Positions 52,901 to 53,299 are shown, counted from the stretch's first letter. The stretch is DNA of 64,000 nucleotides from Octopus sinensis (GCF_006345805.1 NC_042997.1:51584001-51648000), one strand, 5' to 3'. Numbers and translations are program-made. Notes: a model not told the origin generated them from the letters alone.

Positions 52901-53299
52901 CCCATCTTGTATGTATATATGAATTAGTGATTATCTATAAAAGAAGCAAATGATATGTAAAATTCTACCATAACAATAAGGCTGTCATATTTAAGTATAA
53001 AAGACAATTTCTATGTAGCAAAAACTATTCTAATTTTTTTTTCTGTTTTTGTTTTCCAGGTTGACGCTGATGGTTTGACATTTGTGGCAGTGTTTATTGT
53101 TGCTGCTTTGCTCGGAGGAGTTCTAGTACAATATTCTCACAATGGTGGCTTGGTTGGCAATTTAAAGGCTTGTCGCAGTCGGACTATCATGTTCACCTTT
53201 ATGTTGTTGTTACTACTCTATGTCATGTGTTACACAACTATCTGGGTACACATTATGGATCTAAAACGCATTTATCCTTGGCGTCAGAAAATCATGTAA
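7837..53299 (+). CDS. HEXB: Beta-hexosaminidase (GH20, HEXA/HEXB family, beta-type active site), 14 coding exons, 804 aa, with N-terminal pro-region and C-terminal TM hairpin
   Basis: Joined exons 7837-7939, 8337-9089, 27300-27412, 29198-29308, 32812-32913, 33588-33693, 36306-36513, 36818-36919, 40488-40578, 45410-45581, 46967-47057, 48205-48309, 51078-51195, 53060-53299 total 2415 nt in one open frame. Motifs: [89 protein letters not shown]. Symbol denotes family similarity, not proven 1:1 orthology. Confidence 0.93.
8337..9089 (+). CDS. HEXB: Hex coding exon 2: pro-region plus GH20 domain I start (GEPWPLPQ...[11 protein letters not shown]...TEES)
   Basis: Acceptor ttgcag at 8336; 753-nt open frame containing track ORF 8483-9163; donor T|gtaagt at 9090. 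Confidence 0.9.
9526..10071. mobile_element. 546-bp palindromic element: two divergent tRNA-head + microsatellite + hammerhead-tail units
   Basis: Arms 9526-9805 and 9814-10071 are reverse complements around spacer tatgccca; A-box 9814-9824, B-box-like 9859-9868; CTGATGA at 9984 (+) and 9608-9614 (-). Confidence 0.85.
10560..11830 (-). mobile_element. Degenerate RTE LINE 3' part (same family as 15160-16487)
   Basis: (cat)n tail at 10560; decayed PHD-like, YLGD and GRPRKT segments on minus strand with many stops/frameshifts. Confidence 0.75.
13911..14851 (-). mobile_element. RTE LINE 3' fragment with long 3' UTR
   Basis: Minus peptide [48 protein letters not shown]; (GAT)n tail; close reverse complement of 42645-43393. 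Confidence 0.9.
14868..15160. repeat. Compound TA/CATA minisatellite (~26-bp unit catacatacatatatgtatatatata)
   Basis: Direct reading; units contain the palindrome tacatatatgta. Confidence 0.9.
15160..16487 (+). mobile_element. 5'-truncated RTE-clade LINE (RT C-terminal half, one frameshift ~15575)
   Basis: [45 protein letters not shown]; ends ggacgttaaac(gat)n. Confidence 0.95.
16488..16808. repeat. Compound minisatellite (~22-bp unit catacatatatgtatatataca)
   Basis: Direct reading. Confidence 0.9.
16901..17046 (+). mobile_element. Short RTE 3'-end retroposon
   Basis: ttaggaagggcatccagcc...ggacactaaat(gat)n. Confidence 0.85.
17240..18560 (+). mobile_element. Penelope-like element remnant: GIY-YIG endonuclease plus pLTR
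   Basis: Decayed peptide KAKFP...[29 protein letters not shown]...[17 protein letters not shown]; followed by hammerhead-like motif 18236-18326. Confidence 0.75.
18655..19376 (-). mobile_element. RTE 3'-UTR-derived retroposon with internal 62-bp tandem repeats
   Basis: (cat)n tail; units start 18831, 18893, 18955; near-identical reverse complement of ~58200-58925. Confidence 0.9.
19633..21062. repeat. Giant degenerate (TA)n array 1 (~1.4 kb)
   Basis: Almost exclusively A/T alternation. Confidence 0.97.
21427..21545 (-). ncRNA. Type I hammerhead ribozyme with intact core and long stem II
   Basis: Minus strand: CUGAAGA (21537-21531), G-C-closed extended stem II, GAAA (21445-21442), palindromic stem III ACAGCUGU, GUC (21436-21434). 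Confidence 0.8.
21980..24138. repeat. Giant degenerate (TA)n array 2 (~2.2 kb) punctuated by tttaca
   Basis: Direct reading. Confidence 0.97.
24290..25200 (+). mobile_element. Second Penelope-like remnant (GIY-YIG C-terminus plus pLTR)
   Basis: [15 protein letters not shown] / [11 protein letters not shown]...VKILS...[10 protein letters not shown]...PSLNRKLE; degenerate hammerhead 24998-25041. Confidence 0.75.
25230..25710 (-). mobile_element. Two tandem short RTE 3'-end retroposons
   Basis: (cat)n starts at ~25230 and ~25593, each followed by the family terminus. Confidence 0.8.
25810..26580 (-). mobile_element. Old RTE LINE fragment
   Basis: Minus peptide CWYGHVMC (track ORF 25833-26087), YLGN-like segment near 26390. 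Confidence 0.6.
27300..27412 (+). CDS. HEXB: Hex coding exon 3 ([38 protein letters not shown])
   Basis: ttttattag acceptor, gtaagc donor, hallmark WGALRGLET; 113 nt. Confidence 0.95.
29198..29308 (+). CDS. HEXB: Hex coding exon 4 ([37 protein letters not shown])
   Basis: ttccag acceptor, gtaaga donor, substrate-binding DTSRH; 111 nt. Confidence 0.97.
29502..29795 (-). mobile_element. Short RTE 3'-end retroposon
   Basis: (cat)n ttagcgtccgctttccatgcaagcatggg... Confidence 0.85.
29800..30305 (+). mobile_element. Non-autonomous Helitron (506 bp)
   Basis: A|TC 5' end, cccgagcaacaccggg hairpin 30278-30293, 3' CTAG|T, no TSD, CpG-rich. Confidence 0.8.
32812..32913 (+). CDS. HEXB: Hex coding exon 5 ([34 protein letters not shown])
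   Basis: caacag acceptor, gtaagt donor; 102 nt. Confidence 0.97.
33588..33693 (+). CDS. HEXB: Hex coding exon 6 ([36 protein letters not shown])
   Basis: aatcag acceptor, gtatgt donor; [13 protein letters not shown] motif; 106 nt. Confidence 0.96.
33977..34700 (-). mobile_element. RTE 3'-UTR-derived retroposon
   Basis: (cat)n tail and family terminus; internal partial duplication 34345-34450/34490-34620. Confidence 0.8.
35005..35790 (+). mobile_element. Degenerate RTE-like RT fragment (different family)
   Basis: [48 protein letters not shown]. Confidence 0.7.
36306..36513 (+). CDS. HEXB: Hex coding exon 7 (HTYSWG...GPINP...[12 protein letters not shown]), catalytic D492/E493
   Basis: ttaag acceptor, gttagt donor; GAT GAA at 36491-36496; 208 nt. 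Confidence 0.97.
36818..36919 (+). CDS. HEXB: Hex coding exon 8 ([33 protein letters not shown])
   Basis: ctacag acceptor, gtaaag donor, phases 2/2; SNP...LEYY motif. Confidence 0.92.
37092..37460 (+). mobile_element. tRNA/CORE-like SINE, family B (complete)
   Basis: tRNA-like head with gggttcagtccc, internal TA/TG microsatellite, tail gatggtgccctagcatgaccacagtc...aagtaaaagata. Confidence 0.75.
37558..37767. mobile_element. piggyBac-type MITE (210 bp)
   Basis: TTAA|CCCTTTCGTTAC...GTAACGAAAGGG|TTAA: 12-bp perfect TIR, TTAA TSD. Confidence 0.9.
38020..38210 (+). mobile_element. Short RTE 3'-end retroposon
   Basis: ggttggttataggaagagcatcc...ggaaagcaaatgttaactgatgatgatg. Confidence 0.7.
40488..40578 (+). 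CDS. HEXB: Hex coding exon 9 ([30 protein letters not shown])
   Basis: ctacag acceptor, gtatgt donor; WQEV active-site Trp. Confidence 0.93.
40800..41158 (-). mobile_element. tRNA-derived SINE, family A
   Basis: Reverse complement of 1051-1400. Confidence 0.75.
42645..43393 (+). mobile_element. RTE LINE 3' end with long 3' UTR
   Basis: [17 protein letters not shown] coding end, (GAT)n tail; inverse of 13911-14650. Confidence 0.9.
43851..45044 (+). mobile_element. Decayed mariner transposon (Mos1/SETMAR-like transposase, ATG 44031 to TAA 44971)
   Basis: TA TSDs at 43849-50 and 45045-46; imperfect ~30-bp TIRs; [38 protein letters not shown]; internal deletion and stops. Confidence 0.88.
45410..45581 (+). 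CDS. HEXB: Hex coding exon 10 ([12 protein letters not shown]...[21 protein letters not shown])
   Basis: ttatag acceptor, gtaagt donor; WYLD motif. Confidence 0.96.
45790..46240 (+). mobile_element. RTE 3'-end stub followed by RTE RT/PHD-region fragment
   Basis: (gat)n tail ~45883, then [13 protein letters not shown]...[18 protein letters not shown]. Confidence 0.75.
46967..47057 (+). CDS. HEXB: Hex coding exon 11 ([30 protein letters not shown])
   Basis: ttatag acceptor, gtaata donor; GGEACLWxEY; 91 nt. Confidence 0.96.
47170..47360 (-). mobile_element. Short RTE 3'-end retroposon
   Basis: cattcatcaccatttaatatgttttccatgctggtatgggttg... Confidence 0.7.
47650..47990 (-). mobile_element. SINE family B
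   Basis: Reverse complement of family B tail and head (ttgaacctggaaccatgtggttgg). Confidence 0.65.
48205..48309 (+). CDS. HEXB: Hex coding exon 12 ([34 protein letters not shown])
   Basis: ttcacag acceptor, gtaatt donor; AERLWS and HRCRM; 105 nt. Confidence 0.96.
48930..49540 (-). mobile_element. DNA transposase remnant, PLHIKLG...QGERFHQDI type (recalled as CMC/Chapaev3-like)
   Basis: Minus peptide [44 protein letters not shown]...[11 protein letters not shown]; superfamily label from memory. Confidence 0.7.
50548..50890 (-). mobile_element. RTE 3'-end retroposon
   Basis: (cat)n tail, ttttccatgctagcttgggttgg, ctacagctggatgcccttcctaatgcc. Confidence 0.7.
51078..51195 (+). CDS. HEXB: Hex coding exon 13 ([39 protein letters not shown])
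   Basis: ttaacag acceptor; RG...GxxYC end of GH20 fold then linker; proposed donor CCG|GCAAGT; read-through stops at TGA 51214-51216. Confidence 0.85.
52031..52236 (-). mobile_element. tRNA-derived SINE, family C
   Basis: Minus strand head tggcagaaacgttagc...gttctgagttcaaattcc, central tcggggtcgataaataaagtaccag; decayed relative ~33335-33475. Confidence 0.7.
53060..53299 (+). CDS. HEXB: Hex coding exon 14: two hydrophobic (TM-like) segments
   Basis: Strong polypyrimidine ttttccag acceptor at 53059; phase-0 frame [25 protein letters not shown]-...[37 protein letters not shown]; membership in the Hex mRNA is inferred. Confidence 0.72.
   Translation, partial: VDADGLTFVAVFIVAALLGGVLVQYSHNGGLVGNLKACRSRTIMFTFMLLLLLYVMCYTTIWVHIMDLKRIYPWRQKIM

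Follow-up and report, generated by a model that had tools for sequence, protein, structure and literature searches.

Soluble and Membrane-Bound Hexosaminidases

Animal beta-N-acetylhexosaminidases of the HEXA/HEXB type are textbook soluble lysosomal enzymes. Human HEXB and HEXA (PDB 3LMY, 1NOU, 2GJX) are built on a GH20b plus (beta/alpha)8 fold, are soluble, and end five residues past their final Cys. Other GH20 enzymes are membrane bound with a lumenal catalytic domain: insect FDL, a member of subfamily 2, and nematode HEX-2 and HEX-3, which belong to subfamily 1, all have an N-terminal cytoplasmic tail followed by a transmembrane (TM) segment and a stem (type II). Enzymes of these types specifically remove the beta1,2-linked N-acetylglucosamine of the alpha1,3 arm from N-glycans and have a Golgi or microsomal location. 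In the literature consulted, Golgi hexosaminidases that process N-glycans have been identified only in insects (FDL) and nematodes (HEX-2/3), and we found none described for molluscs, the N-glycans of which include paucimannosidic forms. A C-terminal anchor is known from lysosomal acid phosphatase (ACP2), the membrane-bound precursor of a soluble lysosomal hydrolase, which has a single C-terminal TM segment and a cytosolic tyrosine motif. Here, we analyze a stretch of 64,000 nucleotides from Octopus sinensis (GCF_006345805.1 NC_042997.1:51584001-51648000; hereafter the window, with positions counted from its first letter) that contains a GH20 hexosaminidase gene of 14 coding exons. Its last exon, exon 14, is probably translated and would tether the beta-N-acetylhexosaminidase to a membrane by a C-terminal helical hairpin.

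The octopus protein shares with human HEXA/HEXB the GH20b plus (beta/alpha)8 fold, the catalytic Asp-Glu pair, the Arg of DTSRH, the WYLD and GGEACLW motifs and the terminal Cys, but it has in addition a disordered N-terminus of ~150 amino acids (aa) and, where the soluble human enzymes end, 104 aa comprising a linker and two TM helices. Like FDL and HEX-2/3, it would be a membrane-bound GH20 enzyme with a lumenal catalytic domain, and it belongs to the same subfamily as FDL. Unlike these type II proteins, which are anchored near the N-terminus, as stated in the original prediction for the FDL type and in agreement with the literature on FDL and HEX-2, it combines a predicted signal peptide with a C-terminal hairpin. 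Nor does it look like an FDL ortholog, as Carabus FDL (P0109) groups with insect Hex proteins, far from the octopus clade. With ACP2 it shares the order of a lumenal hydrolase domain and a C-terminal membrane anchor, but it differs in having two helices, no tyrosine motif and a conserved second helix (TM2). A glycosylphosphatidylinositol anchor, which calls for a single hydrophobic C-terminal end with no charged tail, does not fit its two hydrophobic segments and charged tail. In our literature search, we came across neither an animal GH20 enzyme described as having a C-terminal anchor nor an annotation of the hairpin, and yet this architecture is already public, unremarked, in automatic predictions including those of RefSeq.

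Gene Model and Conservation of the Terminal Exon

The window is AT-rich eukaryotic DNA with a GC content of ~33%. The gene was rebuilt exon by exon, guided by the Octopus vulgaris protein CAI9715024.1 (P0002), and exons 1-10 of the rebuilt model match this protein exactly (all coordinates are in table 1). The exons upstream of exon 14 lie on the same strand and encode the GH20 motifs DTSRH, HWH.VDDQSF, HLGGDE, and GPDYC. Residues 174-700 of the product align with residues 48-551 (of 556) of human HEXB (3LMY; E 1e-132), and because the alignment stops there, the fold can be taken to end at GPDYC700, leaving 104 residues that have no counterpart. A Pfam search with these residues (701-804) gave no match.

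The original prediction, which had been made from the DNA alone, placed a terminal exon at 53060-53299 and described an 804-aa enzyme whose GH20 fold ends at GPDYC and is followed by helices L731-Y750 and I768-M791 on either side of a 17-aa basic loop (K, R, R). Each of these elements was recovered here. The exon opens after a strong acceptor and stays open for 79 codons up to the TAA stop; the rebuilt model reproduces the length and both helices exactly; the loop corresponds to S751-T767 and a 13-aa tail follows TM2; and the HEXB alignment independently ends at residue 700. The two helices were found by hydropathy as well as by AlphaFold2, and coding-type conservation of the exon, on which the original prediction also depended, is borne out by exclusively synonymous differences among octopuses and by homology to bivalve and gastropod tails.

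Over all 14 exons, the gene differs from the Octopus bimaculoides locus at only 12 of 2415 bases (0.5%). Exon 14, on a level with the other 13 exons, differs at one of 240 bases and exon 13 at none of 118, against 5-10% in the flanking introns. In a third octopus contig (L001, 94% identical), 22 differences are found in the 148 bases that precede the acceptor and two inside exon 14. Divergence from both octopus sequences drops sharply at the acceptor boundary, and each of the three differences within exon 14, which fall at two sites, is a synonymous third-position change. The protein encoded by the exon is 100% identical to the C-terminus of the O. bimaculoides RefSeq protein and to that encoded by the third octopus contig (P0001).

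The RefSeq protein in question, named "beta-hexosaminidase subunit beta" (P0144 = XP_014771935.1, XP_052822571.1, and others), is 804 aa long, has the same C-terminus (ending in ...RQKIM) and differs from the rebuilt model only by T14A and R53K (2 of 804 residues). A first search with the peptide of exons 13 and 14 had returned only an open reading frame (ORF) of 105 aa from a genomic contig (Logan), as if exon 14 were absent from every gene model. The cause was the clustering at 90%, which had placed the 804-aa protein of O. bimaculoides in a cluster under a truncated O. vulgaris representative. A further search, with out-of-frame ORFs across exon 13 and aimed at genomic contigs of related octopuses, gave no hit. 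The truncation itself can be traced. CAI9715024.1 (651 aa) ends with ...MTRLW because TGG TAA was read into intron 11, the true donor being TG^GTAATA at 47057^47058 (^ marks the cut), and it therefore lacks exons 12-14, which encode the last part of the catalytic domain as well as the membrane anchor. For this gene, the O. vulgaris annotation is thus truncated, and the full product can be obtained only by allowing a GC-AG intron.

A Molluscan Family of Hairpin-Bearing Hexosaminidases

Among full-length proteins, the nearest to the catalytic domain are molluscan ones of 620-1073 aa (Pinctada, Mytilus edulis, Candidula, and Haliotis), which also have two hydrophobic C-terminal segments. The similarity extends to the tails themselves: by tblastn, those of Pinctada and Mytilus match positions 53066-53290 of the window (E 2e-11 and 4e-13, respectively), and Smith-Waterman comparison of the octopus exon with the tails of all four gave z values of 11, 13, 7.5, and 5.8 relative to segment-preserving shuffles, none of 1000 shuffles reaching the real score. 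The octopus exon fits the common hairpin motif K.C[RK].[RK][TS]I...F......Y.MCYT..W. In both Pinctada (L002) and Haliotis (L003), the two helices are encoded by a single terminal exon that begins in phase 0, ~8 aa before the first helix (TM1).

A hidden Markov model (HMM) profile built from seven hairpins and run against 1.84 billion representative proteins retrieved only 21 clusters. Seven hits were long enough to be judged. The six that were examined all prove to be GH20 enzymes that carry the hairpin at their very C-terminal end; they come from Tegillarca (1002 aa), Pecten (1073 aa), Haliotis rubra (1047 aa), Pomacea, Haliotis rufescens, and Tubulanus, the hairpins of the last two having been among the seven that made up the profile. 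The seventh hit is the weakest (E 2e-4, 2230 aa). The short hits that were inspected are mostly ORFs from genomic contigs, called across this terminal exon. Two of the hairpins in the profile, which recovered them, belong to Tubulanus (P0025) and to a transcript (P0017); they lack pairwise similarity to the exon of octopus (z about 0-1) and share its architecture only. The molluscan orthologs (Pecten maximus XP_033755247.1, Haliotis rubra XP_046550141.1, Tegillarca granosa KAJ8302882.1, Pomacea canaliculata PVD21026.1, and Pinctada imbricata FSP39_010784) resemble the octopus protein in domain order, in their K.C[RK]N[KR]TI...Y.MCYT..W hairpin and, where checked, in the phase-0 terminal exon. 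Their public entries are automatic predictions, named only hexosaminidase or "uncharacterized protein."

In a neighbor-joining tree of the catalytic domain (118 sequences, 512 columns, no bootstrap), nearly all proteins with C-terminal TM segments fall into one clade, the named members of which are molluscs and the nemertean Tubulanus; an amphioxus protein (P0015), placed elsewhere, is the exception. Within it, Pinctada and Mytilus together form the sister group of the octopus protein, and the two-helix forms of Haliotis and Candidula are nearby. The ordinary 528-aa HEXA-like proteins of Octopus sinensis and Argonauta and insect FDL lie outside this clade. The gene thus appears to belong to a paralogous clade distinct from the lysosomal-type, HEXA-like gene of octopus, and the hairpin tail is a conserved, family-specific module of that molluscan clade. 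The original prediction of a hexosaminidase with a C-terminal two-helix anchor is supported as regards the architecture. This architecture is not an octopus novelty; it characterizes a conserved molluscan family. About 20 paralogs, mostly from bivalves (P0009, P0013, P0010, P0021, and others), have a single C-terminal TM segment. Some of them (P0009, P0013) retain a "VFVICWT" remnant that aligns with the YFMCYT of TM2, which suggests that the one-helix forms derive from truncated hairpins.

Several observations weigh against a translated, membrane-spanning last exon. Exon 14 can be spliced in frame only from a GC donor, a rare type, and 4 nt farther downstream lies a GT donor, use of which would cut the protein short of the hairpin. 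In the 3' untranslated region (UTR), the first 200 bases are nearly as conserved as the exon, so low divergence alone is no proof of translation. We found no spliced octopus transcript in the database searched, the octopus support consisting of gene predictions. The octopus linker is ~28 aa shorter than the bivalve one and has no third Cys, and in octopus the net charge of the loop (+3) hardly differs from that of the tail (+3).

Catalytic Domain and N-Terminus

Pfam recognizes the GH20b2 domain (PF14845) at residues 180-315 (E 2.6e-19) and the GH20 domain (PF00728) at residues 337-664 (E 3.3e-83), and on both domains the sequence classifies the protein as a member of GH20 subfamily 2 (HEXA/HEXB-like). 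The active-site motifs are intact: IDTSRH, HWH.VDDQSF, HLGGDE (488-493), CWYLDL, and GGEACLW. D492, E493, E633, and W637 are invariant in an alignment of 50 sequences; in one of 54 sequences, this still holds for E633 and W637, and at least 90% of the sequences conserve D492 and E493. The AlphaFold2 model of the full O. bimaculoides protein has a predicted local distance difference test (pLDDT) score above 90 over about residues 180-700, and residues 19-143 are disordered.

The N-terminal signal peptide assumed by the original prediction is likewise a prediction here: a short hydrophobic stretch typical of the cleavable type is present at residues 1-19, and comparable stretches begin the orthologs P0127, P0135, and P0137. 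Upstream of the GH20b domain (window 8690-8800; residues about 146-185), we noted a motif, RI.WDW.DF...(E)QKVRR^(A/S)P..T.GEPWP.PQ, within which AlphaFold2 places short beta-strands at 146-170. The dibasic site [KR].R[RK] that precedes AP is kept across most of the C-terminal-TM clade. It may be a proprotein-convertase cleavage site, use of which would remove the disordered, low-complexity residues 19-143.

Proposed Mechanism and Role

If exon 14 is translated as proposed, cleavage of the signal peptide would leave the catalytic domain on the lumenal or extracellular side, TM1 would cross the membrane from outside to inside, the basic 17-aa loop would stay in the cytosol, and TM2 would return across the membrane, with the 13-aa tail outside. 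Cys763, in the loop, is a candidate S-acylation site, and [RK]-x-[RK] at the cytosolic border of TM2 a candidate signal for export from the endoplasmic reticulum (ER) or for sorting; a dibasic ER-export signal is known from Golgi glycosyltransferases. The conservation of polar and aromatic residues in TM2 suggests a specific helix-helix contact, not mere anchoring. Anchored in this way in a membrane of the secretory pathway or of the cell surface, the enzyme would trim terminal beta-N-acetylglucosamine or N-acetylgalactosamine from glycoconjugates on the lumenal or extracellular side.

The role that we judge most likely is that of a membrane-bound processing hexosaminidase, a functional analog of insect FDL with the opposite anchoring geometry. 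Its assignment specifically to Golgi processing can be offered only tentatively, and we would put it at somewhat less than an even chance. Because the Golgi enzymes described are those of insects and nematodes, all anchored at the N-terminus, with none described for molluscs, a processing or surface role is attractive but unproven. The glycan-editing function suggested in the original prediction is likewise a conjecture. The combination of a signal peptide with a C-terminal hairpin in a conserved molluscan clade would represent a third, independent route to a membrane-bound hexosaminidase, and the clade provides a specific candidate for the enzyme that has the processing or surface role in molluscs.

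On the other hand, the anchor may belong to a precursor. In this scenario, which is possible though rather unlikely, the hairpin delivers the enzyme to the endolysosome without mannose-6-phosphate, the linker is cleaved and a soluble lysosomal hexosaminidase is released. A HEXB-like catalytic domain (E 1e-132) with a beta-type WYLDL pocket would suit a lysosomal enzyme, as would a linker that is modeled with low confidence, and is probably flexible, between the fold and TM1 (residues 710-727), and bivalves have expanded the family into many single-TM paralogs with short basic tails. However, the cytosolic loop of the octopus protein contains neither a Yxx-hydrophobic nor a dileucine sorting motif, octopus retains a separate, ordinary soluble HEXA-like gene (P0071, P0080), and TM2 is more conserved than a disposable carrier would need to be.

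A more elaborate form of the processing hypothesis is doubtful at present. It holds that the hairpin is a sorting or assembly module, formed by F772, Y779, MCYT, and W787 of TM2 together with the juxtamembrane Cys and dibasic residues, that the enzyme is a mollusc-wide Golgi or surface hexosaminidase that trims N-glycans and evolved, with the opposite anchoring geometry, independently of FDL and HEX-2/3, and that in octopus the GC and GT donors switch between products of 804 and 727 aa.

Slightly less probable still is a cell-surface enzyme, located for instance on the plasma membrane of sperm, that serves the recognition of gametes or cells instead of biosynthetic trimming. Nothing in the sequence points to gametes, and GH20 subfamily 2 enzymes usually have acidic pH optima. 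The predicted topology would nevertheless expose the catalytic domain outside the cell, and beta-hexosaminidases on the plasma membrane of sperm have been reported in Drosophila and an ascidian, although their anchor is not known and an uncleaved signal peptide has only been hypothesized (PMC2492878).

Hairpin Anatomy and Predicted Topology

Hydropathy was computed according to Kyte and Doolittle (KD) in 19-residue windows with a threshold of 1.6, which both segments exceed (peaks of 2.62 for TM1 and 2.17 for TM2). By itself this is no more than chance would give and is weak evidence: of the stretches in the window that run for 79 codons or more with no stop, microsatellite excluded, 16 of 96 hold at least two such hydrophobic segments. 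Homology, conservation, and gene structure, by contrast, are well above chance. For the exon-14 peptide with an alignment of 18 sequences, AlphaFold2 predicts helices at peptide positions 4-27 and 34-71 (mean pLDDT 71.9); for the full O. bimaculoides protein, it places them at residues 728-752 and 766-796, after a disordered linker (710-727). The linker that follows the fold is 25-30 aa long and contains Cys (CEGC).

When 18 hairpins are aligned, F772 and W787 prove invariant, with C763 (position C38 in the exon peptide), I768, and Y779 nearly so. TM1 contains no conserved residue, being just hydrophobic, and looks like a plain hydrophobic anchor. Where octopus has its 13-aa tail, the bivalve orthologs have a conserved EF.GSFEKR.KS tail. 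The loop would lie on the cytosolic side according to the positive-inside rule, which is clearer in the orthologs, where the loop has a more positive net charge than the tail, than in octopus. Because the charge difference is small in octopus, the proposed topology rests mainly on the orthologs.

It is conceivable that only TM1 spans the membrane, the second segment being re-entrant or interfacial on the cytosolic side and the tail cytosolic. TM2 indeed contains many Tyr, Cys, Thr, and Trp residues (YVMCYTTIW) and does not reach the hydrophobicity of TM1 (KD 2.17 vs. 2.62), the octopus tail is as basic as the loop, and many paralogs have one TM segment, with the "VFVICWT" remnant in P0009 and P0013. 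We nevertheless consider this arrangement improbable, as the second segment comprises 24 residues, is well over the threshold, and is helical in AlphaFold2, and as the loops of the orthologs are clearly more positive than their tails.

The Exon 13-Exon 14 Junction

The two-span hairpin is part of the protein only if exon 14 is joined to exon 13 in frame. The remaining 12 introns of the model are all GT-AG, with good donors, and intron 13 is in frame only as GC-AG. Positions -1 and +3 to +6 of the GC site are perfect (G^GCAAGT), whereas the tandem GT site does not match the consensus at +4 to +6 (GTATCC). GC donors represent <1% of donor sites; at their other positions, they typically agree more closely with the consensus, and an association with alternative splicing has been noted (PMC2490688). 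The tandem GC/GT donors, 4 nt apart, are also present in O. bimaculoides (L004, about 34783-34788), whose RefSeq model passes from ...CEGCSKP to VDADGLTF... at this junction. Because exon 13 and its donor are base-for-base identical there, that model must use the GC-AG intron. The splicing of exon 14 to exon 13, on which the original prediction depended, is thus supported by the same junction in a second species, but the GC-AG intron that it requires had gone unmentioned.

Two other ways of joining the exons were rejected. A small missing exon within 51200-53059 could have mended the clash between a phase-1 donor and a phase-0 acceptor, but tblastn with the linkers of the orthologs found none, the only GC-rich patch there (52029-52235) is absent from O. 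bimaculoides, and the GC donor resolves the clash. A phase-0 donor, ATT^GTACAG at 51159^51160, is a poor match to the consensus and would delete CEGC, which is kept in the RefSeq model.

Should the GT donor at 51200 be used, the frame would end at a TGA (53062-53064), the hairpin would be lost, the product would be a soluble protein of 727 aa and exon 14 would be nothing but 3' UTR. The GT donor is kept in O. bimaculoides, the 3' UTR is conserved about as well as exon 14, and the link between GC donors and alternative splicing (PMC2490688) makes a minor soluble isoform plausible. That the octopus hairpin ORF goes untranslated altogether is very improbable, however. A frame of 79 codons with tail similarity to bivalves and gastropods at z 6-13 would not survive in untranslated DNA, the differences in exon 14 among octopuses (three, at two sites) are all synonymous, the GT site departs from the consensus at +4 to +6 and the GC site reads G^GCAAGT, RefSeq uses the GC junction, and Pinctada and Haliotis keep the phase-0 terminal exon.

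ORF length alone is uninformative in the window, partly because a multicopy repeat holds long stop-free stretches. That the hairpin is a hydrophobic ORF arisen by chance in AT-rich DNA between genes or within an intron, and belongs to no gene, is refuted despite the 16 of 96 long stop-free stretches with at least two hydrophobic segments, since it is contradicted by the homology, by the exon boundary, by the constraint across species, and by the RefSeq model.

Table 1. Positions of the hexosaminidase gene, its exons, and the predicted elements of its product in the window (^ marks a cut)
Feature	Position	Strand	Remarks
GH20 hexosaminidase gene, 14 coding exons	7837..53299	+	2415 nt joined, 804 aa
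Predicted cleavable signal peptide, residues 1-19	7837..7893	+	Short hydrophobic stretch read from sequence
Exons 1-7	7837-7939, 8337-9089, 27300-27412, 29198-29308, 32812-32913, 33588-33693, 36306-36513	+	
Exons 8-12	36818-36919, 40488-40578, 45410-45581, 46967-47057, 48205-48309	+	
Exon 13	51078..51195	+	End of GH20 fold (residue 700) and 25-aa linker
Noncanonical GC donor, phase 0	51196..51201	+	GCAAGT (CCG^GCAAGT); cut 51195^51196; required for in-frame 804 aa
Tandem GT donor, phase 1	51200-51201	+	GCAA^GTATCC; gives ...CEGCSKPAS and a stop, 727-aa soluble form
Long polypyrimidine tract with the AG acceptor, intron 13 (phase 0)	53030..53059	+	Acceptor tttttttttctgtttttgttttccag^G, strong
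Exon 14, terminal coding exon	53060..53299	+	Residues 726-804, 79 codons and TAA (53297-53299); whole two-helix hairpin
TM1, L731-Y750	53075..53134	+	KD peak 2.62; varies among orthologs
Loop S751-T767, putatively cytosolic	53135..53185	+	Juxtamembrane K-x-C-[RK]-x-[RK]-[TS], Cys763
TM2, I768-M791	53186..53257	+	KD peak 2.17; motif F...Y.MCYT..W
C-terminal tail D792-M804, putatively lumenal/extracellular	53258..53296	+	13 aa, charged
Start of 3' UTR, conserved	53300..53500	+	2-3 differences per 200 bases vs. two other octopus sequences

Introns and Repeats

The first 147 bases of intron 13 differ from O. bimaculoides at three positions, which is only mildly unusual among the introns, and nothing was concluded from it. 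The same intron contains a GC-richer insertion of 207 bp (52029-52235; gtcgacctcggtggaatttgaactcagaac) that is not in O. bimaculoides. This lineage-specific insertion is probably a tRNA-derived short interspersed element (SINE), to judge from its looks; at E 1e-3, no second copy was found in the window. A repeat with many copies on both strands (18680-19111, 25250-25730, 29470-29885, 34030-34345, 42879-43334, 58424-58762, and others) is presumably an abundant octopus SINE.

Intron 2 is 18.2 kb long here, versus about 6.8 kb in O. bimaculoides. It contains a degenerate (AT)n-type microsatellite of ~4.3 kb (19800-24138; 2233 copies, 73% matches), in which the GC content goes down to 3%, and, at about 15160-16250 (+), a transposon remnant, namely a reverse-transcriptase fragment (RVT_1, below the Pfam cut-off) accompanied by a zinc finger of the PHD type (PHD, E 3e-6). 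Another, a remnant of a Mos1/mariner-type transposase (HTH_48, E 9e-14) that is broken across frames, lies in intron 9 at about 43965-44830 (+).

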